Below are positions 37,845 through 64,000 of a stretch of 64,000 bases of DNA, one piece after another; positions within the stretch are counted from its first letter, which is position 1, and each line of letters begins with the position of its first letter. A program made the position numbers and the translations under genes. Source of the DNA: Trichoplax adhaerens (lineage: Eukaryota; Animalia; Placozoa); NCBI RefSeq assembly GCF_000150275.1, contig NW_002060961.1, positions 124,001 to 188,000 on the forward strand, given 5' to 3'. The notes below the pieces were generated by a model. It ran no database searches. It saw only the letters and a program-made list of their open reading frames with translations, and was not told the DNA's origin.

Positions 37845-40800
37845 ATGCAACTAAGTATGAAAAAATGGATAGCTTTCGTAATTTTTGCCTTTCAGCTACT
37901 ATTTCAAGGTAATAGCAAACTACGTTTGTCCTTTACTAAATTATATTTAGCAATAAAATTTATTTCCTCTAAACTTTAGCACAATTTCTCCTTGAATTAT
38001 TAACATTACATCATATTCATATGAATTCAGTTAATGTAACAGACAAATATACAATTTATTTTTCCAGATGTCAATGCTTTATACTGTGATAATTCAAATC
38101 AGCAGATTCCAGTGGGCCATTTCTGCGATTGTACTGTCCATTGCCGTAATGGAGCTGATGAAGAATCCTGTAGTAAGTATAATTCAGTAATCAAATTTCA
38201 CAAAGATCTCAGTTAGTTTACTTATATCATACTACAGAATTTTAGATATTGAATAGTTAGCAGCAACGATATCACATAATCCAATAATGTACTTAAGAAA
38301 TTTAAATTCGATTGTTGCATCAGTTTCAGCGTAAAATATTAAACTAATATTAAATATGACTATAAAAAAGAATTTTACTAGCTTTATTTTGGAAAAGGTG
38401 TATTCCCAATTAACAGCATGGCAAAATATGCATCAGCAGTTCTATTAAAATGATGCTTTCGAGTTCTCTCTTTATAACGTTTTATTCGAATTAATATTTT
38501 TAAAGGCGAATTATATCATAAGTACATGAATATACTTTTAAATTTTCTGTATTAATTCATAAATGATCACAGCCGCGCAAGATAACAACTCAATTTTATG
38601 TTAAGCAATCATACTGACATATACACTATTTAACACATTGCATAAATTCAAAATTAGATTAGATATATTAGTGTACATTTCTAACTAGCTCGGTTTAGAG
38701 ACGAACCTAAAAGAGTAAATTTTATTATTAATTGCATAGATTCTTCAAAATTTTCACAGCAGGCTTGTTAGAAATCTCAATATTATTTCGAAATAATGAA
38801 AAATTTGTTTTTTAGGGGAAAAGGCAATATACAAATTTGAACTATTATTACGTAATACTGCATTATTATCATGATTGACGGGTACAGGGAAATTGCTACA
38901 TATTATCCAAGATAGCCAATTTATCGCTTCTAGTATCATGTCGACAGGGTCAAAATAATTACTTCCATTGCTAACAAATAAACGCTAAGAACTTTAATGT
39001 TTTCAGTTTTTTGTTATTTCCCGGTATTTTGGGAGTTATTTCGATAAATAAAAGTATATCGTGAATTCATGATATAGCAAAATCAATTATCTTGTGCATG
39101 ATAATTAGCTTAGCTAGAATTACATTTTATTAATTATTAATTGAGATAAAGCCATTAATCCTAACTAATCCTTTATTATGTACTTTTTTAAAAATCAACT
39201 TGTCTGTAAGCCAATATTCTACTGGCATATTATTAGAAAGGACTGTATTAGCTAAGGCAGAGTTAACATATATACATGAGTAACTTTAATTACTCTAATA
39301 GTGTTACTAATTCTATGCAAATATCTGATTTATCAACAACTTCAGTCCCATTGGATATTTCAGTGGTCAATAGAAGCATGCCAAATTGCATCAAGACCAA
39401 CTGTACCTCTAATTATGTTATTGAATATAGAAGCGGTTTGTTTGAAACTTGAATACAACAAAATGTATCTGTATATGTTGGTGAAGATTTAAAATGGAAT
39501 TGCTTTTAATCTTACGTACAGAATGTAAGACGCTATCTTGTGCAAACTGGAAAAATCTTCAATCCACACCTTCAACTTCAAATAAACAACAATGCGGTAA
39601 GTTTATTTTACCAGTGATAATTATACAACCTCTCAACTTAAGTTTGTTTCTTCTGCTCTTATGGTGAGGAAAAAGTAAAGTATAATGGAATTTGTTTGCT
39701 ACCTTCTTGTATAGCTCTGTCTAATATCTTCTAGAACTGTATTACATTTATGAGTTATAAACCCTCAGACATAATCTCCATAATCTTTACAAACTCTAAT
39801 AGTTCGATTGCTAAGCATATTCTTAAGTCTCCATATTCAACTTATATATGAGCTAAGAATTCAGTCAAACATTACTGTCATTATACCATAGAGATCAATG
39901 GCTGATTAAGCCGGAGGCTTAAGGTTATCTTATTGTTTTACGGCTTGCTATCAAAACTATTTCAGTAGGTGAATTATTATACAACAAGTTCATGGAGTAG
40001 CTTGATATCAGTTTTCTTATATCAGCATTGATCACCACAACGAATGGAATAGTGTAGTGAAATCACATTAGCTAATTACAAGCCCTACCAATGATGAGAG
40101 AATATACATTTCTACGCTTGAAATTCTCGTTTTTTTCTCATTTTTCTCATTCGTGAAGGTAACTTGTGTTGCCATCTATGACTATGGATCTAATATTAGA
40201 ATAATGCTCTATACAGCTATACCACTAATTAATCATCAGAGCCATACTTGTAATCTATGATACTACTTTTGATTAATTGATATTTTCTCTTTATATATAT
40301 ACGTAACATGCTGTTAAGACAAAATAAGTATGCCATGTATGGAGAAATGCGATTGTAGTCCTACACAAATGGAATGTTATCAAAAGCAATTACATCATGT
40401 TTTACAGGGAATGATTTGGCCCTATCCGTCGATGTAAGCTTGTAACAAATATGATAGCAATTAGTAAAGAATATTTATCATTGTCAACCTGGTCGTCACA
40501 ATTATTCAGCTTTATCAGATATTCTGTATTCAAAGCCAAAAATTAATTTCTGTTCTTTATATGTATGTTTACAGTATATACGATAGTCTAATGCAATATT
40601 AGACATTTACAGCATCTATGTTTATTGCTAAAATTTAGATACGACTAAATATCAATTCAAAAAAATCATGTCATATATTTGACATGATAAGATTCAAACG
40701 ATGCTCAGGCTAATGTCTCAAAATTATTTCATTTATGGCATATTTTTACAGAGTTTTAGCAAGTAATATATTTATGACCTTTCCAATCGATACTACACTC

Positions 40801-43800
40801 AATCAGCCATGGATTCTTTCATTGTAGGTTCATATTTTTTGTAATAATGATCGAGTTTAACTCTGATACAACGGCATAATGAGATGATTATCGAATCGCA
40901 TTGTAGCACCATAATTACAATTGTTCCTATCCAGCGGCATAGCCAAGACGTTGCCTTTATAGTATTAATATTATACTGATATAATTTTGCATATGTTAAA
41001 ACACAGCAATATTTAGACCATAAAAACATTGAAAAAGAGACTGTAATCTCGCTTAAATGTATGCTACGGTACAAGCTTTTATTCTAATAGATCAACCATA
41101 AATCATATAAGAAAAATATACCCTGTGGCGACTTTGAGCTACTGTAGCTACAATTACTGAGTACAATAATTCCACTCCTACAGTATAGTAAATATCTTGT
41201 TTCAAGCTCTATCAGAAAAAAATATAATTTCTTTGTGGTCAGTCCATTATCATATATGAAATGATTTTATGATGAGATGAACGCAATAATTGTAATAATT
41301 CATCTTCAGGAATGCTATGTAAATGTTACAACCTCATTTGCAGTAAAGATATGCAAAAAACTTTAGTATAGATATAAAAATTAGACTAATTCCCCAATAT
41401 CTACAGTCTTTGTGTGGACGATACATAATTACTCGATTTATTGACTGTACTCCACAGACAACTAATGAATGACTACACCTTTTCTTCAAGTTACGAATCC
41501 TGCACTCTTCTTAGGCAATTACTACTTTTATTTTATAACCATATGCGCTTCAATAGATTTCTGCAGTGAGTTCTAATGTTGATTTGCACGAATGTAAGCG
41601 AGCACATGTTACTGTAGTGATGCACCCGTATTTGGTTATTAGGATAGCTATATTTGATATAGTTAGGTTACTCTGAATGTATATTATCGTGAAGCTAATA
41701 TTAGATGATTGCTATCTACTATATTAGAAATTGTTGATGACTAATATTAGCCAGTTGACTAATTATGGTACAAGATTTGTGTGGCTAGAACTCTGTGGTT
41801 ATTAAGATGCTCTTCGGAGAAAGGGGCTTGCACGGAAGTGATGCTAAGTCATATTGATACTGATACTAATAGTGTAATAGAGCTCGAAATACTTTAGATT
41901 TTAGATTAGATTCATGTAGTAGTTAATTATTATTCTACCATTTCTAAAACCTTGTAATAAAAGCCTTTTAGAAAATACCATTTGACTAAGATAATTATTA
42001 TGAGACCCATTTATTACAGTTACGTGAACTCATATTTACAATTATTAAATAGATATGAGCATGTCAAGATTCTGGAACTTAAAGGTTAAAACGTTTATTC
42101 TCCGTTTATATACGGTTCGATTGTTAGAGCCTAGTGCGCCTTTCAATCTACAATAAATTAAATTGCAATAGTTTGTATATTATATCCCGATTTTACTATC
42201 AAAGCATTAACTACAAATCCTGCAAAATTAAACATCAAACATAGCATATGACCTCATCTAGATTATTCTAAGCCATTGATTAATCCCTAATCAATAATTA
42301 GTTGTCGGTAACACAGTAATTTAGCAATAAAATAATGCTCTTGTCGACTTCATTGATTTTAGATTTTTATAGCTATTACGTTTATGGACATTTAGCGACA
42401 ATATGATCAGTAGTAATTCAATTTAATTGATGCTCAGAATATTGTCACCTATTTATTCTATATTTTATCCAAAATTTATAAAAATATCTAGAGATATATC
42501 TACAAATCAATTAACAAATACTAATTTACCGTCTACTAAGCTGAAAAATATTCCTAATCTACGCGCTTTGTAAGTAATAGTCGTAAATCTAAGATATATT
42601 CGTACAAAATTCTAAATTTAATATCAAAAAATAAATAAAAATATTGAAATAAATCTAATATAGGGATATGAGGTACAATCTATTGACCAATATACAGAAT
42701 AACATGTTCAGAAATTTTAAAATGTTGCAAATATTGTAAGTTATTGCCTACAAGAAAATTTATCGAAATAGTTCTATTTTAACTTTATTTCAAATCTATA
42801 TGGCTGCTAATTTTAAATTAATTACATAGTACTGCAAGTTAATGATAAATTAAATCGTTACTATTCATATGTTCTAAGCAGATTGCTGAATGGGAACAAG
42901 ATAACTATGATTAGCGAAAGTGGATTTAATGAATTGAATAATCTAAAGATATTGTAAGTATTTTGTTAACGGTAACATACACCAATTTCATTAGATTAAA
43001 TTTTTACGAGATACAGCAGCTAAAATTCGATTAAATAAATTCAACACATCATAACTATAGGAATATAAGAAATAATCCAATCACACAGCTCTCCAGCAAA
43101 ATCTTCTCACCGCTACCAAAACTAACAAATTTGTATGATAATGCTCTTTGTAGTCTATAACTGAGCATCCATTGACTATAAATGTCCAGTTTCATCATAT
43201 ATAAAGTGAACATGAACTTAAACAAAATTACTGATCAATTACATCAATATTTCGCGCGATAATTTTAGTAACGAATCATGATTATTTTCTTTATATCCTT
43301 TTACTTGTAACGTTTTGCTATCGTAAGAATATGGGCAAATATTTCTGAATTCTAATGATGTAATGAAACATTACCATAATTTCTAATCAGAAATTTGGAA
43401 ATGACCCTAATCCAATCATTAGATGCTGATATTTTTCGCTACGTTCCTGACTTATCGATCTTGTAAGTGCTTCGGTCTGAATGAAGATATATAGGTGCTA
43501 GCTTATTTTGAAATCCTAATTTTAAAGCCAAAGAAATAATTCCTAAGACGGATTGCTATTAGTGTATAAAAATAGCTCATAAACTGTAGATAATCAAAGC
43601 TATCAAGTACACTTAATGATTGACTATTTTTGCTATATGTTTGTTTTGAAAACAAGAACACTGGGAAAATCTCACCTTCTTGAGATAAAAACTGGCACTT
43701 TCGAAAATCTGAGAAAATTAAAATTCTTGTACGTTTTATCTAGGAGCTTTGTAAATTATTCCTGCAATATATCAGATTTATCAATCAAAGAATTTCAGAA

Positions 43801-46800
43801 ATCGTATTACTATTACCGCTAGCAGTTTAATATCCTGTATGTAGTACTTTTAGTAATAAACTTACAGTAGATCAGATACCGTACTGAATAAAACTTATTA
43901 AGGAAACCATTCTACAATTAATCGATTTTATTCACATCGTATATGAATTTTTAGATCTTTAGAATCGAACAAGATCCGGTCACTAACCAAAGATTCGTTC
44001 CGTGGATTACAGAGCCTCTCCATACTGTACGCATACTTAATGCTAAAAATAGGTCAATTACCAGTAGACAGTGATCGACAGAGCATCAACCAAGCAATTT
44101 CAAATTGCAAATATGTTCTTACAGACATAGCGATCCTCCACAAAGTTATATTATCTATATAATTACTATACTGTAAATAGAGATTTACGACATATAGAAA
44201 TGAATATACTTTTCTTTCTTGATATAGTATACTTTAGTTTATATAATATCATACCCATAAACTGTATACCCTATACAATTGACGATTTTCATTCATAGAA
44301 GGCCACTGTTAATACACTTCTCTATCTAGACTTCCCTGTGACCCCATGTTACCATATAAAGTGATATTAATCAAGTAAATAACAATGACGTGAAAATTTG
44401 GATAAACGAATTTTTTATGCTATTAATCACAGGATCATTAGAGGCAATCCAATAGAGAAAATAACAAAAGACTTCCTACAGGAAATGCCTATGATCAACT
44501 ATGCGTAATAAATATATACAACTGTAATTTAAACTACCTTAACTTGAACCAATTTCTTGAAACTACTACCTACGAGCAATTGATAAATCAAATAGTATAT
44601 GTTAAAATTTATTAGTAGATAAGATTAATATATGACAAAATTTTTTAATTAGAAACATCGACAACATCGAGAATGAGCACTTTGAAATAGGATCTTTCCG
44701 TAAACTTAAACATCTTTTTCAACTGTTAGTATCATAATACATGAGTAAAAGGTTGTAGAAATATTTACAAATTTTGATAGAACCAGCGTTTGGTTATGAC
44801 AAGACAAGAAGGCGAAAATAGATTAAATTTCTTTTGACACTTAATCCTATGATGACATTCCATTCTAAATTTTTCGAACTACCTATTTATTATTATGCCC
44901 ATGTTAGAGATATATCGTTCGGTTTTATTCAACACTTACAATGTGGAATCATGTCAGATCTGACTAGGATTCAGAAACTGTAAGTCCAGAGGTAGTAATA
45001 ATGTGCGACGAAAGGCATAATTGCCAACAATCCGAATATGGTATCATTTTTATGCCAGCATTAACTAAAACATTAATATTTAACTATACAGGACAAATTC
45101 ATAACTTTTAGATATTAAAATATTGCTCATCTGCGGTAGCACTCAGAATATTTACGATGTATTCATTTGATATCAGCAGTACAATTACTACATTTGCAAT
45201 ATTTAAATCTATTATGTTTAGATTCTCCATAAATGATGCTGTTGTTACTATACCAGTTCTATCACATTTTATGAGCTATTTTTCACTAATTGTCAATTGC
45301 TTAGATTTAGAACTTTATATTTATCATTTAATACGCATATTAAAAATTATCACAAGATAGAAATTTACGATTTAAGATTATAGTATTAACAAGACTGAAC
45401 AAATTACTGCAAAGCATTAAAATTATTATACAGCAATATATAGATTCAATACCAATTATTCAGCGAAATATAAAGTGCAATAGATTACTATACTTCATAT
45501 GATAATTTATAAAATCTCTAATAATATCTTGTGGCAAAGCTTGTTATTGCTTTTATGATATTATATATGACCGAATTTAAATTATGTCTATGGCTATTAG
45601 AGTTTAGACTGAATTCATACGGCGATAATTTATGATAGGAGCCTCAAGCAAAGCAAGATTGATAACATTTGTAATGGAGCATTTGAAGAGCTACGGAGTT
45701 TGATAGTGTTGTAAGAAGAAATAATAATCTTTGATCGTGTATACTTGAAATGATTGAGTTCTTGTATAAACTTGCATTATATGGAATAAAATTAGTACAA
45801 GCATTTCTTATATATTCTCTATGTAGTTCAAAACGCCAGTATTGAAACTAGCATGTGATTATTATAAGAATGAAAGGCTACAGTAAAAATGAATAAAGTC
45901 ATTTTCTTTTCATTTAAATGTTTCAGAGATCTATCCGAGAATTTCTTGCGGAATATAACCAAAGGCATATTTAGAGGATTGTCTTCCCTAAGACTACTGT
46001 AAGATTTCATTACCATTATATTCGACATCTTATCACGGAGCTAATGCACTGCTACTGCAGATCTAGAATTGTTTTAACAATTAGTTCAACTGTAATTAAC
46101 ACAGATTTACGCCGCGCATGTAAAATTTAGATCGTGAATCTGTGTGAATGTCTGTTCAAATTTGCCAGAGTTCTCTTTGCATGCTGTGCCTTATATTGCA
46201 TAAAGTATTTAGCTACATAATATCCTAGTATAATGCAAGTACACGTAAAGCTATCAAAGTTACAGCTGAATGCTAATAAAAATTAACCCTATTAAATACA
46301 CCATGCCATGATAGGGTGTGCTATTACATTGTTATACACGTACTCCATATTTTTATTACAGCCTACAACTCTATATTAGATAGTTACATGTGATAAGTGT
46401 CATTTTCAGAGTCAATTATACTTTTATTCTTATAAATCGAATTAAATCTACGAAAACGAACAATTTCGATCCTTACTAAGATTGATACTGAAGATTTTTA
46501 ATAATTTGTGATTATACAATCTTAAAATTTCATTAATTACCTAAAATACGTTAATCTTTTTTGCATTTGCTTAACATAAATTCATGTCAATCAAATCTAT
46601 GCATTTAAAAGTTTACTTGTATATTCTAGAATTTTAAGCAATAATGGAATTAGCCAATTATCTCAGGGATCATTTTCCGAGCTCCAGTCATTACGAACAT
46701 TGTAAGGATTTGAATTATAAACAACGAAATTTTGCGTAAATCCACATATATAATTTATATCGAATAATGATCTCTAATATATATAAAATATCAGCGTTAT

Positions 46801-49800
46801 TATAATTTTAATGCATTAAAAATTCATACCGACACTATCCGATCGTAAGAGTATTTTAGCTAATAGAAAAATTTCGAATTATAACTGATGAAATCATTAT
46901 TTAACTTCTGCGACTTACCTATAAAGTTTATTAGTCAAGAAGTTTCATAAATTTGGCATTTTAATTCATACTTACAGTAGTTTGTCAATAATTTTCTTCT
47001 TAAACATTATAAAATGATTTTAAAAGAATTTTTTACATAATTTCTTTAAATTCGTCTTACGTGCGATTCATTACATTTACAATACGAGAAGGATTTACTT
47101 GCATTTATTGGACCCTTGAGATTGTACCACTTTCCGATATCAGGTTCAGTTAATCCGTTGGGAGATGAAAATTAAGCGGAGAATCAACTTATTAAAAATA
47201 TTTAATAAAGCAATAACTGTACATCAAAGACAAAGAGCATGTAGGAAAATTGTAATACAACTAAATTCTTAACTATATTGCTTATATATTTTCGGAGTTA
47301 CGGCATACGGAATACTTCACATATGTAAGAATAACACTAGTAACAGGAGTATGTTGCGCAAGATAACAATGTACTGTAAGTAGTTCATACTGTATCGAAA
47401 GAGGCATATATAGTATACATTTAAACATATGGTAACTATAATATGAATAACATAATATGGTCTAGTAAAATACGATATAATAGTTATGTAGTGCAGCCCC
47501 AAATATAGCTCAGATTACGATCCAAGATTGTTCGAGAATAGCTTAAATTGTACGTTAGAGTGTAAGATTGTAATTAGTACCTATTTGTAGAAAACGTTTA
47601 CAGTACGTATTATTGCAATTATACAGAGATATTTTATTTGCGAGGCTTTAAATAGATTCGCAAATTAAGAATAGATCGCGCGATGATGAATTTAGATCTG
47701 ATCTGGCGTCTTAATTGGCAAGATATAATTGTGCAGATGAACTGTATACTGTAACTAATTTTTATGTTTATCGTGAATTTTGCTGTAATAATTTCGATTG
47801 TCAGATTGTAAGATAGTCTGATTGTAGTTAGATATTCCTTAATAGTTGTTAGACCAACCCAATTTATGTGATAAAGTGAAGTTTACAAAAAACTGTGGTT
47901 CTTGATTTATTGTTTGAAGATCATTTTATCACAACTTGATATATGGGACTATAAGAAATAGCAGCAACAAAATGAAATGAAAGAAAATGGCAATAAAATC
48001 ACATAAAATCCCACTTGTTATTGCTTTTGTATTTCGTAAAATCTATATTCATTTTTCTTACTTGCTTTAGGATCCTGAATAGGAACAACTTTGAACTTAT
48101 AGATCCAGAAATATGCAATGGTCCTCAAAATTTACTATATCTGTAATGGGAGTAATTTATATTAAATTAAAGCTTTATAACTATGATATTGTTTATCTTA
48201 TCAATTATCTCATCAACACGAGTATTTATCCACACTAAACTATGTAGACTACTTGTTACTGTTACTACACATCACATTTTCTTATATAAATTTTACTTAA
48301 CGGTCATCACAGTTAACAATTAATATCTTCGCTGTCATGTTGATGAAGATATTAGGAATAATTATAGTGTAAAATATTCAGATACATTAACTTTCTAAAG
48401 TTTAGAAGCTTGTACTTTTTACGTATGATTAATTAAATTAGTATAAATACGTATGCACGTCTAGTTATATTCCTCTGATTGTAATAAGATTGGTAATTAA
48501 GATTCTGTAATGTTAACAGAAGTAATTTTTTTAATCTTAAACGTATAAGCCTTAAGATTAGTTATTTCTGTACCACAATTATATGACCGTTTATAACTTC
48601 AGATACGATATCTCTGTATAACCTTTGTCTTATAAGTATTTTCACATACACTATATTGTAAGGCTCTTATCATTATTTTACGACACCCTAACTACTTTTT
48701 ATATCTGCCACGTGTTCTTTAAATGAATATATACATTTACTACTAGCTCGATATTACAGTAATAGCTAACATGCATGGTATCGATATTGCAGGGTTTCGA
48801 ATAGAGACGAAATCAAATCTTAAACTATTTCAGTTTTATGATAGAGTACAGTATGCCATAATATAGATATTCTCTTAGTAATGAATTAAAAAGTACTGTA
48901 CGAAATTACTTTCAAAGAAATTCCTTAATTGTTGCCTAGGGACTTAAAAGAAAATAAAATACAAATAGCCAGTGGGAAAGCCCTGTCAAACTGTTCACAC
49001 AGTTTGCAAGCCGTGTGAGTGTGCATATTTCTTAACTAATGACTATAAATTTATGACAGAATCACCTAATTTCATAGATCATATTTCCTCTAGAAATTTC
49101 GAAGTTAATGCAATCTCAACGCTTGATACTGTGTCACTTTCAAGTCTAAGAAAATTAAGATCCCTGTAAGAAATAATCTGTCATATTTTTAAACTAATAC
49201 ACAATCTTACATAAACTTACCAGTAATTTTAATAATCGCTAGCTACATGACGTCTAGCTTATGTAGCTATTCGTAAATTTCCAACTGCATATTCCTATAA
49301 TCAGATCGTAAAATTGAGAATTTGTAAATTTGCAATAGAATAGTGGGTACTGATATAAGTAATTGCAAAACTTTAAAGTCAACTTCTTCCAACAGAACAC
49401 TAAACAGTAATCCAATCTCGACTATCTTGTATAACGAATCATCTGCACCTCTTCCTTATTTCCGAAAACTGTAAATATTATAGTTATTAAATCTCGACTT
49501 ATTCATTAAAACTACAGTATGTAAAGTTTTAAAAGTGCTAGTTTTAAAGCAGCTATCATAAATTTAAAATGAACAGCAGACAGGCTATTTACATAACTCA
49601 CTAAATTAAACATGCATTAATAGTCAATATAATGCAGTAATGTCATATTTTCATTCTTCAGGGATCTATATACTAATTTCCTAGCAAATTTGACAGAAGA
49701 ATCCCTAAATATCTTCAACCAGTCAACAGATATGTAAGTAAACTTTAAACAATTAAGATTTGTTTAGAATATTGAACTACTTCACTTATGTAGAAATTTT

Positions 49801-52800
49801 CATGCCGTTATGAGCATATCATTTGAGTTATTAATATCTACTGAAGTCGCTATTACAGGACCCATTTTAGTGACTTCGTACTCAAATCGTAAACCTTAGT
49901 AATATCTTCACTGTTCTGATAGCGTTCTTTATAAATAGTGAAGTAGTTGAACGTAATTATTTGTACTATACGAAAAAAATTAAAAATTTGTATGAGAACA
50001 AATGATGCGTAGAGATATTAAGGTGTACCAGTGATGTTCTTTACCGGTAGAATCTTCTGCGACAATCATATAAAAAATTACAAACTTCCATCAATTAAGA
50101 GGAATGGAAAAATCTAGAGAATTCGAGCAAAGCATATTCCAATCTTGAATATGCTGTAATATCTATAATTTGGAGTGATCTTGATTTAGTGAAAATTTTT
50201 TTAACGAAAACACAGACACATTATCTATTGCAACTATAACAAAAATAAGAAAACATAAGGTCTAAAGTAATTATATGCTGTATTATCTGTAGTTTAATCT
50301 ATTCTAGTGTCGACATTGGCTTTTAATCTAACACTACTAGTAATGTTATATACTAACGATCACATAAATACGATTTGTTTATCTTTGCTTTTTCCCGCAC
50401 CCTTTTGCGTTTATTGGAATATATAATCAATAAATCAATCGAATACTCTCTTTCTAACCTGCTATTCAAATGTGCTAAAAATATTGTAAATACATTTTTC
50501 GACTCTTTATCATGTATGTGGAACCATCTTCTAGTAAATTTTCATTATCACACTCCGTCCATGATGTCACAAACACCTCTGTCACAACATTAATGTTTCC
50601 AAATCTCCAAGTTTTGTAAGCAATTATAATAAACCGAATAATTAAAAATTAAGTATCAAATTTATAAGCAATCTTAGATTGTTATGCTTGTTAAAGCTCT
50701 ACAATCCACTATTAATGGAGACTACTATCTTAGGTTATGGTACTATCCAGAAATAACAAATGATTATATACTAATACCTCATTAGTAAACACTCGACCTA
50801 ATACTTGCTACCCTTTAAACTTTAATATACGGATAAAGTTCCCTAGCTATAGTCTTCAGTTAGTTTTTAAATCATTATAAATGTTTTCAAAGTAGGCCAA
50901 AGGCAATTTCTGAACTAAATTTTACTTTTAAATCGCGATTTAAAGTAATCTACTTATTATTTTACCTAGGGATTTTAGCGACAACTTCATCCATCCGGAT
51001 TATAATTACAGNNNNNNNNNNNNNNNNNNNNNNNNNNNNNNNNNNNNNNNNNNNNNNNNNNGTACGCATATCTTAATTTGTGGACTACATTATGAATTTA
51101 AATAAACAGCTCAATTACCAACTCAAAAATTGCGGATAAGCCATATATTATTAAACGGACAAACTTCAGAGGATTGCATAAGTTGAAAACTTTGTAAGTT
51201 TAAATGCTTTATAAATCAGCTTGCTAAGCCGAATCAAATACATCAATTACAAGAAAAATGATTTCTATATGAAGTGATTTATCTTGGCGAGCATAAATAT
51301 GGCGTCAATATTCAATTCTATGAATCAGCTGTAAATAAATCTACTTTAAGTCCATTGCTTTAGTCGGTAGTTAAAAATTTTTAGTGTAATAATGTTTTAC
51401 TGCGATGAAAAAAATGTACTATTTTAACCGGATGTGCGAAAGATAAATTTAAATTATATAGATTATCTATATTAACATTGAAATGATTTTACTATTTTCT
51501 AGATATATTAGACGGAATCGGGTCCAGAGAATTAGTAACGAAAGCTTTCCGTTTCTACCTGCGTTACAAACATTGTAATCAACTTTTCATGATAAAACGG
51601 AACTGATTTAATAATGATATTGTTAAAGGAATAATAGAAAACTTATTATCATTTATTCATTTTTACAGAGATTTGATTTTTAATGCAATCAGTACAATAC
51701 AAGAGGATGCTTTTCGTTCGATTTCTGGGTTGCAAAATTTGTAAGCATGATTATATGACTATTGAAAACATGTAATATTGATATCAAAGTTAATTCATGC
51801 TTATAGTCGCTTTATAGTCCTGTCACTAAGAAGCAAATCGCACAATAACATAGCACTTTATCTAATTGTAAAGAATAAAATTTACCGTTTTTCTTATATT
51901 GTGTGCCCGTAGCTCATATTAAACACTATAAAAGTTAATAGTTGATCGTTCTAATATTTCATTCCATAATAGCTGTAATGAAGATTATGTTTATATGTGA
52001 TGATATGGATTAAAATTTTAAACATGTATAGAAAATTAGAGATTTATTTCTTCCACACTACATCGTTATTTAAAGACATCGTTCCACATAGCTCTACTCT
52101 AAATGAAATACCATTACTAGGGGACCTTAGAAATAAATATTCAAAGGTCTATCATTGTATGTTAATATTCTTCCCCTCGAACGTTTATACCTACAATTCG
52201 CATGGCAATATCCTATCTTACTGTAGAAATTTTTAGCCTATAATTAGCAACATAGGGTATATTTCGGTAAGCCAGTTGTATTCTTGCCACAATTACAGGG
52301 TGACGTATACTCAGAGCCATTAATTATTATCCGCTGATAAAAGCACCGAAAATTATCTATCTTAATATGCATAATTTGATTTATTGATCTATTTTCATCA
52401 CCACCAATTATTGCAGCTAAGCTATTATGCTATATTTGGATCATCGATGCTGTAGCAGAGTACGGTATCTTCGTACGTCGAACTTCCTAGTTTGTAACTT
52501 TATGCAAATATTTTTGGTTATCTACTAGTTAAAAAGATCAGAAATCATCAATAGCCTTATAAACGATTTGATTTGCCACCTATTTCACTAATATCAACCT
52601 TAGTAACTTAATTATCATACTGCATTATGATCACCTATACTCAAGCAGAGTATCAACACACTTCGAGTTCCATAATCTATATAGTACTATTATAACCATG
52701 ACTAAGAATCTAAAATCCAAATTGAGCTATGGAACAGCAGCACTGTAGGATTTACGAATTTTTGTTGGCAACCGAATAAGCTCGCTATGATGATAAATGG

Positions 52801-55800
52801 AAGACGACATCTATTTATTTTCTTCATAAATACGATATACGAGTATATGTTTAGGAAATTTTACTTCTATAGTACATCATGATACTACGTTAACTCTTTG
52901 ATACCTTTTAAATATGTTCCTATGAACGTTGGAAACATTTACATATTAAAGCAAAAGTAATTGCATGCATATTTTTCCTTTCTCTCTTTTGATAATCGGT
53001 AATAAATATTTAGTTTAATATCCACAGAAAGCGTTCTTTTTCTTTTATAAGAGTCAGCCTGGCGGATACTTACGGCACACTACGTACACTGTACATGTGC
53101 AGTTTGTAACACTATCACTGGCTAATTTCGTACGGGATATTATTTACTTACGATAGTAAAGATTTCTCTCACCTTACGCCTGTCATTGATCAAGAATAAA
53201 CTTTAAGACTAAATTAAGATTGTCTAGAATAAATTATTCAGTACTATATTGTTGTTTACTGCAATGATGCTGCACCATGTACACTAGCTCCCATTATAAT
53301 CGAGGAGCACAAAACTCTAATTTCTACTTAGAATGGATCCACCAGTTGGATAGTGCTAACTAATAAACTTAAATTAGCTCGAACATATCATTAAAAATCA
53401 TTTGCTTTTTAATTTAACGATAATTTTATAGGCCAACCAATGTAATTTGCGGCGTAAAGTTATCAATTAAAATGTTTGAACGTAGTCGGTGCAATCCAGT
53501 ATTAATTTGCTGTGAAAGCCTTTTTTTGGAGGATAGGCTTTTGCCAAATCATCATAACCAAATTCGAGCCTATAATCATAAACAAAAAATTGTTTCTGAA
53601 ACATTAATTAAGCAAAAATCAACCTTAACATTTGACGTATGTTTCAGTATTAATAAATAATATCCATCGCATTCATTTCTATTCAAATTTATTATCTTTA
53701 CTTAGATCGTTAGCTCATAATAAGCTCACAAAGTTGTCTGAAAACCAGTTCCGGTTCTTAACTAATCTACGAACATTGTAAGTATTTGTATGAGCGCAAT
53801 AGTTTAATAGCATATAAATATTACCTTCAATAATCCTGTAGTCATTGAAAGCTTCACCTCCTTTTTTGAATTTAATAGAAATTTAACATGCAACCTAATT
53901 GTCAGCATTGAACCATACTCATTCTTGGATTTAAAGTCCTTACATTGGCTGTAAGATCAGAAATGTTCTGTATTTTCTTCTTATTAAGAATTTAATCTTG
54001 TAAACATCTACATTACCAAGGATTGAAACGATCTTTCTATCACGCAACTATAGTTTCTTAGATAAAAATATGATATCCTCAGTGCCTGAGAAGAGTTTTG
54101 CTGGTATAACAAAAGTAACGGAGATGTACGTTGCATAGAAAATTAAGCTATAATATAAAATAGCCATATACAGTACCTGTTTCGTTAACTAAATAATTAT
54201 TGATTTATTTCATCTAAATTCATGTAACTAATTAAGCAATGATATTTATGCCATTTTTTCATTCTCAGTAAATATTCATATGATTCTTGCATTACGCAAA
54301 TATCGTTATGTATGTGTCTATCCTATAAATGTCCAGTCTACCGTTATAACCAGTGTATCAAGAATGTCTCCTACTTAATAAGGAAGTATTATGTGCATTA
54401 TGCCCCCAAACCTATCTGTCATGATGTTTAATAACAATTAATTGATATCAATTTGGAAAAGTTAAACCATAAAAATTTGCAAATTAAAACGTAGAAAGGG
54501 AAGTTTTTATCTAGGAAAGTAAAATTTATAACATATGGAGTGATCACATACAGCACCTTTCGTTTCACTGTTGCATACTATAGTATTAAATTTTTTAATT
54601 TGTTATCCAATTATTATTACATACCTTTCGCTTAAAAATATTTTATATAGATTAAGCAAGAACAATAACTTTATTCCATCTACTATCTCCAAATTTTAAT
54701 ATAACTATGTGATATATACCAATCTCGAGATTCCAAATTTTAGAAAAATAAGGGCTTTATTGAATCTTATACAAAGATTAACAACACACAGCTCTACTCT
54801 AGCCGAATACTACTAAAGACTTCTAGAACGAACTAACTGAATAATCTAAAGATGTATGCTTTTATACTTTCCGTAGCATTCGCAGCTACAATCCGCATGG
54901 CAACCTTTTACCTTATTTTACACATAGTTGACTTATTCTCAGTAAGACTATTCTACTGCGGACCATCATTAATCCAATATGGATACGACTACAGTACTTA
55001 CGTAGACATTATTCACACCAGCCAAAGTACAATGAATTAACTATATCCTAATATATGATTTACAGTTCTATTTTTACCTATAGCCATATTAGTAACTCAA
55101 CAGCTTACTGTATATAGTCATCTGTACTCTAGCATAGAGTCTCTACCACTATAGTCTATAGTTATAGCTACCAAATATCTCTTAAGATAAATATCTACCG
55201 TACATTATACTAAACATGGCTAACAGTCTACAATCACAATACTAAGTTACATTACAAACTACTTTTAAACATTTACTCTATAGTATATGAATTAATGCTT
55301 ATGATAACATACTAATAAAGCCCTATTCTTTTCCTTACCCCATTAGCCACCTTTCTCAGAATCTCGTTCAAAGAATTGACTTGAGTGTGTTTGATGAAGT
55401 GCCATTGCTCTATCTTCTGTAAGATCGTAACATTTTTACTGCTGTCATAAATATACTTCCAATATTTATTTATTAAAAATTATAGCATTACTTGTATTGA
55501 ACTTATACAAATTCCTTGTTGTAAAAACAGTATGCTTACGGTATTCCATTAATCATCCTCTTCTTATGCTGTCTTAAAACATAAAAAAGGTGTAAAGTGA
55601 GATGTACTTCTATTTCTTTAGTACAGTTGTCGCGGTAGTAAATCTACCGTGATGAATGATATCTTACTTAATTTAGACATGTATATGTATCACGATAAGT
55701 TAGTTATTAATTTAGATATGTGCATGAATTATTTTAGGACTTAATATAGCCGATTCAAACCTGTTCCTAATACAGGTTAAATTATACTAAATATAGTATA

Positions 55801-58800
55801 AGAGTTGTTATGGTAAATTCAAAATAAATCCTGTTAATTATAAGCTAGAGAAAACATTAAGTTAATCTACAGTAATATTAAAAATTCATTGGATTAGACT
55901 AGGAATAATTTAATGTATTCACGAAGTCTTATTGGTCGAAATATATCACACATCGTAAACCGGTTTTATAGCTAGAAAAGCTATTTGAATGATTGATTTT
56001 GAATATTAAATTAGACTTGCATTTTCTAGAATAAAGATATAGTTAGAAGATTTCGAAAGTGCATTTCTCAGTTATTGTTACTTATCTAGGGTAATCTAAT
56101 TAGTTTAGATTAGGCAAGTTTAGTTAAGCAACAACAATATAAAATCTGTCGTTCTTTACCTTCTCAATTAAAGCCAGTTTGAATAAACTAGATAAAAACA
56201 CCTGGCTAGTTTGAAACACAAAGTACTAACGTAGTGCTTGGGTTTTACAACCCCTTAGGTTCGCAATTGTATAACTCAAAATCTGAGTTATTAAAATTAA
56301 GTAAATCTCTAATGTGACATAAGATCAGGCAAACACCGTGTTTATCCTTAAAAGTATACGTTTATTAATAAAGCGCTTGACAAGAGAAGAATCCACTTTT
56401 CTTCCCTCGTAATAACAGTCGAAAGTAGCTAAGATAAACCGGATAATCAACTTCGTCTCCACGATAACAACTCCATATTATCTAACAATTGTATTAAAGA
56501 TATTGCATAAAAACATTACCTTATATAGCCGACTACTACGGCCTTATGCACACGTAGTGCGAATAGTATAAGTACACCGTTTCATCATCAGTAATCATGA
56601 AATTACATTATAAAGGTGGTAGAGTATTCTACTTTTTAATGCTACCCTATTTCATCTACTATTGTAATTAGCTGGAACTAATACAACTAAACTCGATGCA
56701 AACTGTGCAAAAATATATCCAGATCCTAAGTGTATCATATAAATGTGTAACTTAGAACTAAATGTTGTCCATTCGTACAGTACACAAAATTTGATTGTCC
56801 TATAACACTATGAAGTTTTCAGAGTAATAATTATCATGACAAGCTTCCAGCCAGTGCTGTTTCCTAACACATATTGTGTACCCAATCCAGATTATGTTAC
56901 ATATCTACAGTTTGTCACAGTTATTAATAAGCCAGTTTTTTATTATTCAGCAGCATATGTATCCCTCTTCGACCGTACAATATATAGACTTTACATATTA
57001 GAGTTATGGACAATAAAAATATTAAATTTATTGCTAACAAGCTTTTAACGCTTATTGACCTTATCGATATCATTATTTAATCAGAGATTTGAAGGACAAC
57101 GAAATAAGAAATATTGATTTCCAAGCTAGAAATCGAACTGATCAGCCTCCTCATCATATCCGTATATTGTACATCATTGTTTTTATCAAAAACTAGTGTC
57201 TTATGAGAAGTTCTTAATTATTTAATCTTCATGTTTGAATGTATACTTTAAGGTTATATTCTAAAATGCTATAATTTATTTGTTTCGGCTCCGCCGATAA
57301 ACCAATAGCTTCTCAAGTGGTAACAAAATCGATCGCGAAGATTTAAGAAAAATTAAACAAATTGGAATACTGCATCTGTAAAGATCAATCCTGAAATTAT
57401 CGCACTGACACATACTTATAAGTAGTATTTGTACAATTTTTAATTTTAACGTAATACAGTTCGTAATAACAGAATTTATCAATCTTTAGGTCATTCTAGT
57501 AGCTCATTTCCGATTAGTTATATTAAATTCTTAGCTTATAATTAGATATACCATAGTAATTATAGTAAGCTATAACTTGAGGCAATTAGGATACTTTTCT
57601 TTGAAGATAGAAGCAGTAATGTTGAATCTAATAATTTTATGTTAATATAGGATAATGCGGTATTTTACTATAATATTTTCATGTTATTCATAAAAGAGGC
57701 TGAAGTTGATTGATCTATAATATTAATTGACAACTGCATTATATCCTAAATAAATCTTATATTCATACCTTTAGAAATTACATAAAAACGGGTTTAAAAG
57801 ATATAAGAGCATCCGATATCAGCCTTTCGCTAAATCTACAATATCTGTAAGCTGTAATATCGATTAAAATTTGCGTTAAATTTACGAAGCTTTTCCTACG
57901 TAAACTTAGTGAATATCTCACATATCCATTTATTAATATTTGAATCCTAACAATATATATGCACTGCTATTGTCCATTTTAAAGAACCCCATGTACTGCG
58001 TCATAAACATTAAACTAATCTATCAAAATTGAGAAAATTTACCATTACAGTGATATTATCTCACTTGGATCTCTATTACACTTGTTTTTTTATGCGCACA
58101 ATTTAGGCTATTAATTAATAACTTAATAACTGTACTCCCGCCAGATTTGTTCAAAAATTTAAAGAACTTAGTTTACGCGTGAGTAACTTGAGATATTTGG
58201 AATACAATTAGAATTTTATTTAACTCCATTACTTTTAAAACCTTCAAAGTGTCGCAAGTACTTCAATAATGATAATTAAAAATATGGTATTTGATTTAAT
58301 AATGGTTAATATAGCTCTTAGCCAATAATTTCTTGTATAATATTCTGAACAATCCTAACTGATATATTTGTAAGATTAAGTAACATTGATTGCAAAGCTA
58401 TTGCTAAGGTATTATCGAATACGGAATTAGTTCGTGAGCTTCAAATATTAACTCTATTCCGCTTTTTTGTTGTATATCAGATTTTTGCACTATTCTACTT
58501 ATATAACTTCCAGATCGAATTAGTAGCCTTATAATTTTTATAAACGTTCACCGCTGTAACATATATGTCCAACTACTGCATTTACGCGAATAGTTCTGAC
58601 ATAAAAATATATACATTTAATAGGATTAATAAACTTAAGTTGCAAAGTTATTGCTACTTTAATTAAGTACGTCACATCCTTATTAGTAGACAGAACTTAC
58701 TATCAATGTTTCTCTTTATATAACAAATAGTAGCTTCCAGACCGCATCCAAACGTACATTATCAACTGCTATAATTATGAAAATGTTTTATATTTACAAC

Positions 58801-61329
58801 AGTCTTTGTTCCTATTTCAATTTAAAAATAAATAATACTTCTATAAAAGAAATGGACTAAAAATTCCTTCTACGGCCTAAAATTATAGTGAATTATCCAT
58901 TAATGGCATAAGAGAACTTGATTTCAATATATTCAAGTACACTCCTAAATTACTGTACCTGTAAGTATAATTCTCTGATTTATGTAATAATTTCTGAGCA
59001 TCATTATTTAGTACTTTTACGTCTAAAATTTTCATCGATACCTAAACCAGATATTTATAGATGTATAGGAGCTCATTCATAAAGCGCTGTATCATAAATG
59101 CAAGGCAAAAAAATATATTTAATTTGCAATATTCCTACAAAATAGGCCTATAAATCAATTCTCATTCCATCAAAATCTTTTGAATTAAAAGTCTTTAAAT
59201 TACTTTAATGAGATTAAAAGAATACATATACTTGGTTTATAATCTATATGTATACAGTANNNNNNNNNNNNNNNNNNNNNNNNNNNNNNNNNNNNNNNNN
59301 NNNNNNNNNNNNNNNNNNNNNNNNNNNNNNNNNNNNNNNNNNNNNNNNNNNNNNNNNNNNNNNNNNNNNNNNNNNNNNNNNNNNNNNNNNNNNNNNNNNN
59401 NNNNNNNNNNNNNNNNNNNNNNNNNNNNNNNNNNNNNNNNNNNNNNNNNNNNNNNNNNNNNNNNNNNNNNNNNNNNNNNNNGAAATAAAGAGATTTAATA
59501 GTTTACTTATTAATTACACTATGTTTGTGTCAGATACAACAATTATATTACTTTTGATCTTCAGGTTTCTAAATGGAAATCGGCTGACTAGTTTACTGGA
59601 TAATTTCTGCAACGGTACACTTTTAATTAGATTGTAAGTTTCCTGTGTCGATTATGTAAAGTCATATACTTAAATGCAAACTTGAAAAAAGTGATAAACC
59701 TATTATTTTTAGTGAAGCGAACAACAATTTTATCCAAAAGCTGCGTCGTTCCCAATTTTCTGGCTGTCAATATCTACAATTCGTGTACGTACTAGCATAT
59801 ATCAAAATTTTGTAAAATTTATCGATATACTGGCAAGTAAATCATTTTAAACACTCTAGTTATCATATCTACATTGATTTATTTAATTAAAGTTATGAAT
59901 CCAAATTTATTAACAGCAATCATTAGTATTTAATATGCTCGCACGATGCAATCATACAACGAAGTACTGGTATAATAGGATAAAAACATATTATCATCAG
60001 AAAAGCGAACTAACACTAATTAATTAACTTGCTAAATAAATAATTCATCATTTTAAATACCAATATAATTAGTCCTAATGCTTGAAACAAGAATTATTGA
60101 TTAATGTAAGAAATTGAATGCAATACTTATTTAATTTAATAATCCAGTTTTAATTCAGAAGCGTCACTCTAGTCTTTAAATGTTTACTTCTGCTTTGCAA
60201 CAATAACTACTAAGCTATAATTATAATTATGCTTGCTTGGCAAATAGATTTTAGATTTTATATGAAATTGTTTTGTTAAATTTCAGTATGGTACCTTAAT
60301 ATAGCTATGATGGTATGCCGTAATAAGCCATATATTGTTACACAAGATTACTTACTCAAATTAAAATTCCTCCTATCTGTTAATGTGTTAATGTGAAGCC
60401 AATAATAATATAGTGCTTACTCAGATTAGCCTTATGAATTTTTTAATCATTAAATACTCAAATATGATTAGGTAGAAATATTTCAATGTAATAATTGAAG
60501 TTGGATTTTGATTTAATTTAGTAGACCAATCAATTTTGTAGTTATTTGATATCTATCAAGTGATCATTTGCTTTAGATAAATGCGTGAAAAGGAAAAGAT
60601 CAACATATAGATAAAAAGCTATCTAAATAAATTCTTGTCTCATATTGCGGATTATATTATTTAGTTTGTAATAATCATTTAGTAAGACAAGATTCCGATT
60701 AGTATCCGTAATATGATGACATACGCCGATTTCGTCATTATTGTTCTCTTGATAAAAGAGTTTCAACAGAGAGATGAAATAAATATTTCTATTTCCTTTA
60801 TGTTATCTAAAGAACAAATTTGCATAATTTATGATATAGTATGAATTATTAACGCGATAGCTTTAATTGGGCTATAATGATATTATTAAATGACTAGCAT
60901 GCCATCGGTCCATTATATATTATTCTCGTTACTCTGCAGCGGAAGAATTCAGAGTCGAAGTTTATTGAATATACAATTGCGTATTAGTCGTAAATGTACA
61001 ACTACACTTACCAAAATCTTATTAGCAACGCAATAACTTATTTGCGAACGTATCGATTATCAATGGCATGATAAATTTAAAGACAACCTATGATGCAATT
61101 GATATAGTATGGCAGCATTTAAATATCGAAATGCGCAATACTATATTACTAATCCTGCTTTAAAAAATATTGAAAACGGGGGTCAAAATGCAATAAAATA
61201 TTATGAATTGTCTACGGAAAGAAAAGAATAAAATTTTCTCTTATCTTACGTTAATAGGGATCTTTCTACGAACAATATTTCATCCCTCGAATCCAACCTG
61301 TTTACCGATATGAAATCACTGAAAGAAAT
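37845..61329 (+). CDS. Large LDLa + leucine-rich-repeat cell-surface protein (LGR type C / RXFP / GRL101-like architecture), partial; no stop codon or TM region found in the window
   Basis: Signal exon 37845-37908 (MQLSMKKWIAFVIFAFQLLFQ); LDLa-like exon 38068-38172 (YCDNSNQQIPVGHFCDCTVHCRNGADEESC); Cys linker 39522-39596; LRRNT 40319-40433 (PCMEKCDCSPTQMECYQKQL). Then 35 LRR exons starting at 40752, 42492, 42664, 42882, 43061, 43391, 43657, 43955, 44433, 44653, 44908, 45639, 45927, 46630, 48071, 48940, 49094, 49396, 49662, 50535, 50970 (runs into a gap), 51110, 51503, 51669, 53706, 53879, 54054, 55347, 57085, 57775, 58107, 58889, 59565, 59713, 61258. Each complete exon is 69-84 nt, phase 2-2, reading xLxxNxIxxIxxxxFxxLxxLxxL. 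GPCR identity is inferred from architecture only. Confidence 0.85.
51012..51061. other. Assembly gap (N run) interrupting an LRR exon
   Basis: N run inside the exon beginning at 50970 (DFSDNFIHPDYNY...). Confidence 0.99.
56240..56620 (+). repeat. Diverged intronic duplicate, copy 1 (copy 2 at ~61760-62150)
   Basis: Collinear matches: caaccccttaggttcgcaa / caaccctaggttcacaa; actcaaaatctgagtt / actcaaaatttgagtt; ttcttccctcgtaataacagtcg / ttcttcccctcatgagaacagtcg; taagataaaccggataatc / taagataaacgggataatc; ggccttat; cgtttcatcat. Confidence 0.75.
59260..59481. other. Assembly gap (N run)
   Basis: Run of Ns; could hide further LRR exons. Confidence 0.99.
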
Positions 61330-61759: not shown

Positions 61760-62150
61760 GCCCTCAACCCTAGGTTCACAACGATGACTCAAAATTTGAG
61801 TTGCTAAAATAGAGCAAATCGCTAATGTATCACAAATAATCATCACCATTTCATGGACTTTCAAAGTGACATGGATTGCATCTATCTGTTGGAGAATATT
61901 CTAATTTTCTTCCCCTCATGAGAACAGTCGGTAAATGCGTTAAGATAAACGGGATAATCGATGTTTAAGCTCTACGATACTAATTTCATATAACTGGTAT
62001 AAATTACTATCAAATATTCTTTTACATGGGAGTCATCAATCACATTAGTACATTGCTAAACATCAGCACGTAATTATTAAGGCTATCATGGCCTTATATA
62101 ACATACAAAAAATGTGAATCGTTTCATCATACTAGTCATAATCAACACTT
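61760..62150 (+). repeat. Diverged intronic duplicate, copy 2 (copy 1 at ~56240-56620)
   Basis: Same collinear blocks as copy 1. Confidence 0.75.
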
Positions 62151-62995
62151 ACTTTATTAAGATATACAGTTATACACTCATAACCACTGAAATTAGTTAA
62201 AGTTACTACGGGTATAAAAGTGCTTGCTGATTTTGTTTAGCAATTTACTAAGTTTGCTCTTGTAACATTTAATTATTAGTTATGTATGACATAGGGTTTA
62301 ATGATTAAGTGGAAGTAGATTTAATAGCCATCTAGAGATTTACGCAAACGCACTCAGTAAGAAAATAGATTCTTTATCATAAACCGCAAGTATGAGGTAG
62401 TTATCGTATAGCAGGGCGTAAGCTGTCATGAAGAAGCGTAAGAACAATTGACTCTTTGATATTTGAAACTAACTAAATCTGAGGAAGAAATAGCTAGAGT
62501 TTATAGCTTTGAAGATATACCACATGCACAGAATATGATTGTAGTGCTAAACATAGTTTATACCATAATAGTTTTATACGGTAGAAAATAGCGAAGACTG
62601 TAAGTTTTGTAAATATCTAAGCTTGGCAACCTTAATTATCGACCGCGCGAAAATGTTGTAAAGATGTCTATATTTAAGGACCACTTAGAATGCCTATGCT
62701 AAGTAAATGCTACAAACACAATATAATCTTTATGCACTGCATTATGGTAGTGAAAAGTCATCACCGTATTCCTTATTCAAACTCAATGCTAGAAACTACC
62801 TTAAAACTAAACAATCTCATTACGGTACAACATATTTCTAGAAAAACACGTATGGATTGTGGTTGTTGTATAACTTTATCGACGAAATAGCTTTTTAGTT
62901 ATTCAAACCAAAAATCAACTTTCACCAACTAAATTGGTGCGTTAATAGCAATACTAATGCAAGTATAGGAGATGCAGTTTATCTGAGTCCCAGAT

Positions 62996-63045
62996 NNNNN
63001 NNNNNNNNNNNNNNNNNNNNNNNNNNNNNNNNNNNNNNNNNNNNN
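62996..63045. other. Assembly gap (N run)
   Basis: Run of Ns. Confidence 0.99.
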
Positions 63046-63303
63046 ATACCTCGAAATAATAAGAATGACAAAGAAAAGGGCATAAATCATGAACAATTTG
63101 ATCAGTTATGAAGTCATGTATCATGTGTGGGTATTGCAAGCAACACTAATTAGATTGCTCTATTCAGCTAGAACAAATATCAAGTCTGTTGATTGCTAAT
63201 CCATGTCCATGAATCCTTACATCCACGTATTCATACATACTATATTACAAATGTCTTTTCAATTGTGTGTCTGTCAGTGCGTAAAACGTGAACATTTATT
63301 CAT

Positions 63304-63458
63304 GCTGCATGCTAATTCAAAATACACAATTCTGCTGTGTTGTCGCCATTTATCCGTGAGCAGCACAAAATTTGTCTGTGCATAAAACAGTTGCATGCTA
63401 TCCAAAATATAAATTATTCTACTGTATGGCCGCCATTCATCCGTGTGTAGCACAAAAT
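63304..63458 (+). repeat. Tandem ~87-bp duplication upstream of the Helitron coding remnant
   Basis: cgccatttatccgtgagcagcacaaaat (63344-63371) versus cgccattcatccgtgtgtagcacaaaat (63431-63458); similarity extends upstream (tgcatgcta..caaaata..attct.ctgt). Confidence 0.75.
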
Positions 63459-63459
63459 G

Positions 63460-64000
63460 GAAACTAGAGGTGACAAACCAGGTTATTCGAAAACGAGGTT
63501 AATGCCAAGGACAGCATGCTGCACGATTGGCACAAGATTGGGAAAGACATGCCTTTCATAGACAAAATGAAAAACAGGAGAAGAACGCGTGACACGATTA
63601 TCACTAGACAGAGAAAGACGCCCTGCTCAAAGACAGAATGGAACAGAAGTAGGCATGTAGTGCGACTATTACAAAATGCACTGATGCAATCCATACGAAG
63701 GAACTTGGGAAACAAGGAGCAACAGCCATGCCGTAATGCATGACCTGGACAAGCTGCAATATTGCTTTAACTAACAGATCGTCATGAAATCGGCCAATGG
63801 AATAAAAAATGCCCCAATGCAATGCATTTATATTCACTAAAGAGAAAGTCGCCAAATCAAGCCTTGGAAATTCACGATTCCAGCTCCGTTGTAAGAAAGG
63901 GAAAATTGAGCTACCGCTAATTCGATCTCCACCGTCTCAATACTTGGCGCTATTAACGGAAAGTTCAGAAGAAGCAAAGCATTTTCGTACATGCGTATAT
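63460..64000 (+). mobile_element. Degenerate Helitron Rep/helicase N-terminal region (runs off the window)
   Basis: Broken charged repeats (QHAARLAQDWERHAFHRQNE; TRLSLDRERRPAQRQNGTE), then, with a 1-nt frameshift at ~63812, DRHEIGQWNKKC/PQCNAFIFTKEKVAKSSLGNSRFQLRCKKGKIELPLIRSPPSQYLALLTESSEEAKHFRTCVY. This matches the Helitron zinc-finger consensus (H.lG.m...C..C.A.....E.........F..CC..GKi.LP....PP..l..LL......akhFr..ir). Confidence 0.8.

Follow-up and report, generated by a model that had tools for sequence, protein, structure and literature searches.

Introduction

How should a long series of small exons be read when each encodes one leucine-rich repeat (LRR) and any of them could be removed without loss of frame: as interchangeable parts of a variable receptor, or as the fixed repeats of one long protein? 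The question is raised by a locus of the placozoan Trichoplax adhaerens, lying within C1396:124001–188000 of the 105.6-Mb assembly of 1414 contigs. This stretch of 64,000 nt is referred to as the window; coordinates are window positions, continued in the same numbering beyond its end, and L002 denotes the next 20 kb fetched downstream. An earlier reading of the letters alone (the original prediction) described, at 40752–61329, at least 35 interchangeable one-repeat cassette exons behind an LDLa module, and proposed a combinatorial recognition receptor of the LGR type (G-protein-coupled receptors with leucine-rich repeats) in an early-branching animal. The animal, being Trichoplax, fits that description. 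We find it probable that the span forms the central part of a single gene from the placozoan LGR expansion, roughly 35 kb long, in which a fixed and fully used LRR array forms part of a G-protein-coupled receptor (GPCR).

A predicted receptor gene around the exon array

The array runs on beyond the window. In the 20 kb downstream, 14 further LRR exons (L002:1048–7491) are followed by a single exon encoding a hinge and a seven-transmembrane (7TM) domain (L002:7628–8786, stop codon 8787–8789), which is the kind of membrane anchor that the original prediction had hoped to find by extending the contig. The full model, with three exons ahead of the array, has lengths of 64 + 105 + 115 + 3507 + 1159 = 4950 nt and stays in frame from ATG to stop, so that by this model 48 LRR exons in frame with the last exon place an LRR ectodomain N-terminal to the 7TM domain within the same gene. 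All 48 are open in the lineage of this assembly (H1) and carry AG/GT splice sites.

The terminal exon encodes 385 residues within a 393-codon open frame: a partial repeat, the last of the series, then a cysteine hinge, then an entire 7TM domain of rhodopsin type with DRY, CWxP and NPxxY motifs. Its nearest relatives in the PDB are RXFP1 (5e-33), LHCGR (2.5e-30), TSHR (1e-29) and FSHR (2e-26), the next receptor class following at 1e-10, and it matches Pfam 7tm_1 at 2.8e-25. The hinge before the first transmembrane helix (TM1) fits the LGR motif CxPxPDxF..CxD(I/L), and its end, CQPLPDQFTLSTCTDILSHTLLRVFIW, can be aligned with LHCGR and FSHR over their 'PDAFNPCEDIMGY...LRVLIW' region. Both the closest relatives and the hinge motif bear out the proposed LGR type.

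At the 5′ end, exon 1 (37845–37908), as read from the sequence, carries the start codon and a signal peptide (MQLSMKKWIAFVIFAFQLLFQ) and ends in phase 1 at a gtaata donor. Exon 2 (38068–38172; YCDNSNQQIPVGHFCDCTVHCRNGADEESC) was located by a cysteine-density scan. All 37 of its PDB matches are LDLa modules, the best being those of RXFP1 and RXFP2 at a weak E-value of 0.035; neither a strict LDLa regular expression nor Pfam gave a match. In LDLa modules the cysteines C1 and C3 pair with each other, and both are absent from exon 2, which makes it a degenerate LDLa-like module. The predicted LDLa module ahead of the array is thus present in this altered form, and it lies outside the 40752–61329 span to which it had been assigned. 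Exon 3 (40319–40433), which passes from phase 1 to phase 2, encodes an LRRNT cap (CMEKCDCSPTQMEC...) recognised from its paralogous copies and without a Pfam match. The public model TRIADDRAFT_31783 of T. adhaerens, of 353 aa and 100% identical to the 7TM exon, covers the 7TM part only.

One repeat per exon, in a single phase

Between 40752 and 61329 there are 34 secure one-repeat LRR exons on the + strand, each preceded by AG and followed by GT(A/G)AGT. About 28 of them measure 72 nt, and the others 75 nt (two), 84 nt (two), 69, 78 and 81 nt (one each). Every LRR exon is phase 2-2, comprising 1 nt that closes a codon, full codons and 2 nt that open the next, and the codon split by the intron is the L4 position of LxxLxLxxN. 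The chain of 48 exons has 47 LRR-LRR junction codons; every one encodes a hydrophobic residue (34 L, 6 I, 3 V, 2 A and 2 F) and none is a stop. Splice sites and junction codons therefore agree with the organisation described originally, namely one LRR per exon, symmetrical phase 2-2 and the intron at the same repeat position; the count of at least 35 was about right, since two or three doubtful exons stand beyond the 34 (57309–57377, plausible; 53028–53090, doubtful; and a pseudo-exon at 45311–45382).

The array is real and lies far above chance, because the matches of a fixed detector concentrate in one strand and phase: over 20.7 kb, phase 2-2 of the + strand yields 28, whereas the opposite strand yields 3, each other frame 1 and the upstream 37 kb 3. 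When the six frames were scanned for a generic LxxLxLxxNxL motif no enrichment appeared, since the motif is interrupted by the intron, and exons were called by exon-aware scans instead. A profile hidden Markov model (HMM) built from 22 seed exons recovered its seeds only and was judged too narrow. The window as a whole is AT-rich (GC about 0.30) and contains three runs of N, and far from the array a lone LRR-like open stretch (18504–18563, + strand) scored 13.8 bits against the exon HMM.

Exon order is kept among paralogues

At least 90 places in the genome match this 7TM domain, about a dozen of them at 50–59% identity. The 20–40 kb upstream of six close paralogues were examined, five of which (p1, p3, p4, p5 and p6, with 7TM identities to this gene of 52–59%) were used for a test of exon order. 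In each of the five, 37–45 phase 2-2 exons of one LRR were detected on the sense strand and 0–4 on the antisense strand. Scored by the best monotonic chain of exon pairs, collinearity with the present array reached z values of 9.7 (p1), 6.6 (p3), 9.3 (p4), 7.6 (p5) and 6.8 (p6); none of 300 order shuffles attained the observed score, and the chain extends from the second exon to the last. Best exon match scores rise to 81 between paralogues and to 54 within the gene. Because the exons are collinear one by one with five paralogues, each repeat has an old and fixed positional identity. Retention of this order since the 7TM domains diverged to 52–59% identity fits a fixed, fully used solenoid, since optional or shuffled units would be expected to lose it.

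This comparison of exon order speaks against shuffling, and with it against the idea of interchangeable cassettes: every exon has an ordered positional counterpart in the five paralogues, and similarity between exons at the DNA level is nil. No direct repeats of at least 40 nt were found in 40000–64000, and a sensitive self-BLAST of the whole gene returned three weak intronic pairs and no exon pairs. Repeat search, self-BLAST and exon match scores likewise revealed no groups of alternative exons that resemble one another. Within the array there is a single diverged duplicate of notable size, and it is intronic (56248–56478 against 61765–61991, 69% identity over 240 nt).

Identity between positional counterparts was 70% at consensus positions, 31% on the convex side and 20% at the variable positions of the concave face, against 50%, 10% and 9%, respectively, for random exon pairs. 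This pattern is the usual one for LRR receptors whose paralogues bind different things.

The layout also extends to the 5′ modules. Nine paralogous copies of the LDLa-like exon occur in the genome, 20–28 kb upstream of paralogous 7TM exons where they could be paired; copies of the LRRNT exon lie upstream of paralogous arrays, and contig C1357 shows the order LDLa-like, LRRNT and 7TM exons. Judged from these copies, the succession of LDLa-like module, LRRNT, LRR array and 7TM domain is a subfamily trait, and the subfamily with this one fixed architecture numbers at least six Trichoplax LGRs and probably about ten. Some of the 7TM matches elsewhere in the genome are fragments with stops. At least six LGR 7TM exons of the subfamily, with long LRR-exon arrays between them, lie in C1394:138000–351000, where some 7TM exons carry stops (two TAG codons in that at 267716–268441); this is a tandem birth-and-death cluster.

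Features along the array

All LRR exons listed here lie on the + strand and measure 72 nt unless a length is given. The series opens with LRR exon 1 (40752–40823) and exon 2 (42492–42569, 78 nt), followed by exons 3 (42664–42735), 4 (42882–42953), 5 (43061–43132), 6 (43391–43462), 7 (43657–43728), 8 (43955–44026; Pfam LRR_8, E 0.0019) and 9 (44433–44504). Exon 10 (44653–44724) has a weak consensus, and exon 11 (44908–44979) has partners in p1, p3 and p4. The pseudo-exon at 45311–45382 is LRR-like and was kept outside the model, as its terminal TA would form a stop with the G of the next exon. Exons 12 (45639–45710), 13 (45927–45998; Pfam LRR_8, E 0.003), 14 (46630–46701), 15 (48071–48142), 16 (48940–49014, 75 nt) and 17 (49094–49165) come next, and then exon 18 (49396–49470, 75 nt), which is kept in Trichoplax sp. 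H2, exon 19 (49662–49733) and the degenerate exon 20 (50535–50615, 81 nt).

Beyond the first assembly gap lie exon 21 (51110–51193, 84 nt), exon 22 (51503–51574), which gave the best paralogue match (score 81), exon 23 (51669–51740), whose donor is GT here, exon 24 (53706–53777; Pfam LRR_8, E 0.0015) and exons 25 (53879–53950), 26 (54054–54125) and 27 (55347–55418). The second half of exon 28 (57085–57168, 84 nt) is degenerate. It is followed by the possible extra exon at 57309–57377 (69 nt), which is outside the count of 48 and differs from its H2 counterpart at 6 nt with only 2 residue changes, and by exon 29 (57775–57846), also degenerate, exon 30 (58107–58178) and exon 31 (58889–58960). 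After the second gap, exons 32 (59565–59633, 69 nt), 33 (59713–59784) and 34 (61258–61329) complete the series within the window.

Assembly gaps and reads

Gap 1 (51012–51061) lies in the intron between exons 20 and 21. One 7294-nt contig from each of two independent DNA runs (X1 and X2) spans it and shows no other differences; the two sides are thus continuous. The DNA contigs have 104 letters where the window has 52, so the gap is really about 104 nt. A hidden exon is unlikely here, although 104 nt could still hold one.

Gap 2 (59260–59481) lies in the intron between exons 31 and 32, and since the flanking exons are all phase 2-2 the frame is kept across it whatever it contains. Exactly between the partners of these two exons, p1, p3, p5 and p6 carry a conserved exon (..NYI..IEDGFF..), and no similar exon was present in the read flanks of the gap. 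To judge from the paralogue exon order, one LRR exon has probably gone unread or been lost at this point. Contig C85 was considered as a filler for the gap and rejected, as it holds another copy of a 458-nt repeat (see below) and its flanks are unrelated.

The runs that best hold the 7TM exon, X1 and X2, are genomic DNA, and run X5 gave scattered, low-depth, unspliced pieces at the locus. A 550-bp stretch at 54706–55256, between exons 26 and 27, is present here and absent from the H2 locus. Its core (54708–54899) is a very high-copy repeat, with a summed contig depth of about 1.8e5 against about 50 in the flanks; the core turned up in every one of the four runs, the RNA run among them. A 60%-identical copy lies at 52085–52460. 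The stretch is probably a young mobile-element insertion in the intron.

Comparison with Trichoplax sp. H2

The orthologue in Trichoplax sp. H2 is represented by a fragment, RDD41878.1 (locus L005). H2 aligns to 49315–59259 with an identity that drops from 98.5% to 94.7% along the array; after the position of 59259 it carries 452 nt of a dispersed repeat, and the alignment resumes midway through the 7TM exon, at 72302 according to BLAST (letters are identical from about 72296), with 99.3% identity. In the H2 annotation the locus is divided between two products, a 278-aa LRR protein and a 7TM fragment. In two of four H1–H2 segments, exons and introns have diverged to about the same degree.

The repeat at the H2 junction (L005:9460–9911) is about 458 nt long and sits right after the position of gap 2. 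Contig C85, unplaced and 1064 nt long, has a copy (C85:146–611) that is 96–97% identical to it, and about ten other contigs hold weaker, partial copies. This element may also be behind the H1 assembly break at 59260. Divergence between the two genomes shifts sharply, from 94.7–98.5% identity along the array to 99.3% just downstream of the gene (72302–84000), and this shift may reflect the divergent-haplotype pattern described for the H1 and H2 lineages.

Weighing the explanations

Our favoured reading builds on the observed exon anatomy, frame, domain identities, family context and positional conservation. The predicted product, of about 1650 residues, would consist of a signal peptide, a degenerate LDLa-like module, LRRNT, about 48–49 LRRs, a hinge (CxPxPDxF..CxDIL) and an intronless rhodopsin-type 7TM domain. 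Its one-LRR exons would have arisen by old duplication of a phase 2-2 exon, their symmetry being a legacy of that growth. All repeats would be spliced in constitutively and form one long LRR solenoid, probably of two turns, whose concave face may bind a protein or peptide ligand, with binding relayed through the hinge or the LDLa-like module to the 7TM domain.

Several observations weigh against it. One exon may be missing at gap 2; the sole run that is certainly RNA (X9) covered the high-copy repeat at 54708–54899 only, and not the gene; and the protein collection holds no long protein model of the gene, only 7TM-size or partial models. The H2 assembly is without 13 kb, equivalent to about 17 LRR exons, TM1–TM4 and part of the loop before TM5, and the donor of the exon at 51669–51740 is lost there (AT for GT). 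Over the 15 exons shared by H1 and H2, the ratio of non-synonymous to synonymous divergence (pN/pS) is 1.04 (24.5 non-synonymous differences to 6.5 synonymous ones), changes fall on structural positions about as often as chance predicts (6 of 23, with 29% expected), and several exons are degenerate (those starting at 50535, 57085 and 57775). In the sequences compared, these changes look like drift in at least one lineage, which fits gene birth-and-death in a family that includes 7TM fragments with stops. The H2 orthologue looks broken and the locus is fast-evolving, so that the H1 copy may be under weak constraint.

Carried further, the same signs would describe a young or incipient pseudogene in both H1 and H2, its exons still open because little time has passed. 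The repeat that abuts the middle of the 7TM exon in H2, the missing 13 kb and lost donor, the pN/pS near one, the unspared structural residues, the equal exon and intron divergence in half of the segments, the pseudo-exon at 45311 with the degenerate exons, and the lack of gene coverage in the RNA run all lean towards decay. We nevertheless consider it rather unlikely, because all 48 exons are open in H1 with AG/GT sites and hydrophobic junctions, the whole model is in frame, and the 7TM exon retains a 393-codon open frame with its DRY, CWxP and NPxxY motifs; moreover, a neutral H2 branch alone could account for much of the pN/pS. The H2 genome is a short-read assembly (PMC6057997) and may have collapsed a repeat at the 13-kb absence, although the repeat abuts the 7TM exon even so.

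The combinatorial receptor proposed originally, in which about 48 symmetrical LRR exons are optional or shuffled by splicing or by somatic or germline change to yield many ectodomains, draws on the facts that every exon is phase 2-2 with a length divisible by 3, leaving any subset in frame, that concave-face residues are the least conserved between counterparts (20%, compared with 31% on the convex side) and that pN/pS is about 1. If true, together with a dozen similar paralogues it would give an animal that lacks classical LRR immune receptors a variable repertoire for recognition. It is, however, improbable in view of the order and identity that the exons share with five old paralogues and of the failure to find repeats or clusters of similar alternative exons. 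The symmetrical phase is an inheritance from exon duplication that runs through the whole family; the layout recurs in at least five paralogues, which implies that diversity is encoded by gene copies; and the H1–H2 changes strike structural positions as often as variable ones, so that drift fits better than selection for diversity. Of the suggested germline exon shuffling, the germline turnover is borne out, but what turns over is whole gene copies, as the H2 locus without 13 kb illustrates.

Division of the locus into two genes, one for a secreted LRR-only protein with its end near 61329 and the other for a shorter LGR that begins near 65048, is the reading to which we give least credence. 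A 3.7-kb interval with an N gap (62996–63045) and GC-richer open frames does separate the two groups of exons, and the H2 annotation splits the locus; but the exons starting at 61258 and 65048 have consecutive partners in p1, p5 and p6, which argues for an intron rather than a boundary between genes. Neither a second signal peptide, LDLa-like or LRRNT exon nor a terminal exon or stop was found there, and the H2 split coincides with the mutated donor and the deletion. The original prediction had named two or more adjacent genes as an outcome that would contradict it, and the paralogue partners spanning the interval do not bear this out. The GC-richer sequence itself (62400–64000 and L001:2207–2750) has several open frames of 60–85 codons on both strands; those in the intron 61330–65047 resembled a transposon by eye but had no Pfam match, and the stretch is possibly the remnant of an inserted element.

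Relation to known receptors and meaning for placozoan biology

Forty-six LGRs have been reported in T. adhaerens, 41 of them placozoan-specific with unusually many LRRs, including Tadh-LGR-15 with 34 (Hauser, Koch and Grimmelikhuijzen 2022, PMC9545775). The present gene is quite likely a very long but conventional member of this expansion. It shares with the placozoan-specific class the organism, the LGR 7TM domain, a cysteine hinge of its own, an unusually long LRR ectodomain and a large lineage-specific expansion, and differs in having about 48–49 LRRs and a degenerate LDLa-like exon that is not mentioned for the class. The gene table of that study uses TriadITZ identifiers only, and no XP or EDV identifier of this gene appears in it.

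With the type C LGRs RXFP1 and RXFP2 it shares the order of an N-terminal module (in the present gene LDLa-like), LRRNT, LRRs, hinge and rhodopsin-type 7TM domain; RXFP1 is the best solved relative of its 7TM domain, and the LDLa modules of both are the best matches of exon 2. The original prediction of far more LRRs than the about 10 of RXFP1 and RXFP2 (range 7–10 in type C) holds at about 48, and the LDLa-like module here differs from theirs in lacking C1 and C3 and failing Pfam. Some RXFP/LGR3-type genes have phase-1 introns in TM2 and TM5 (PMC11863921), whereas the 7TM domain here is one open exon. LHCGR, FSHR and TSHR resemble the gene at the aligned hinge–TM1 junction and differ in having about 9–11 LRRs, no LDLa module and a long hinge insert. 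In these vertebrate receptors, one LRR per exon, phase-2 introns and a single large 7TM exon are a family trait, a layout that the present gene shares. The H2 orthologue and the paralogues bear the NCBI name 'GRL101-like', and the Lymnaea receptor GRL101 likewise combines LDLa modules, LRRs and an LGR 7TM domain. GRL101 has many LDLa modules and few LRRs, whereas the present gene has one degenerate LDLa and very many LRRs. The exon clusters of Dscam1 and the cassettes of lamprey variable lymphocyte receptors are also built from modular repeat units, which in the latter are LRRs, but they consist of clusters of similar alternative units or of flanking donor cassettes, whereas the exons here are unique, ordered and conserved in place among paralogues.

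These findings leave current views in place and correct an under-annotation, replacing a public 353-aa 7TM stub by a gene of about 1650 aa, within a subfamily that shares a signal peptide, a degenerate LDLa module, LRRNT, 40–50 LRRs and a 7TM domain. The combination of an LDLa-like exon with an RXFP1-like 7TM domain hints, as far as sequence resemblance goes, at a descent of the placozoan-specific LGR expansion from type C (relaxin-receptor-like) LGRs, and the difference between H1 and H2 indicates a fast turnover of these genes. Carried by a GPCR, an LRR solenoid with about 48 repeats would rank among the longest LRR ectodomains known.

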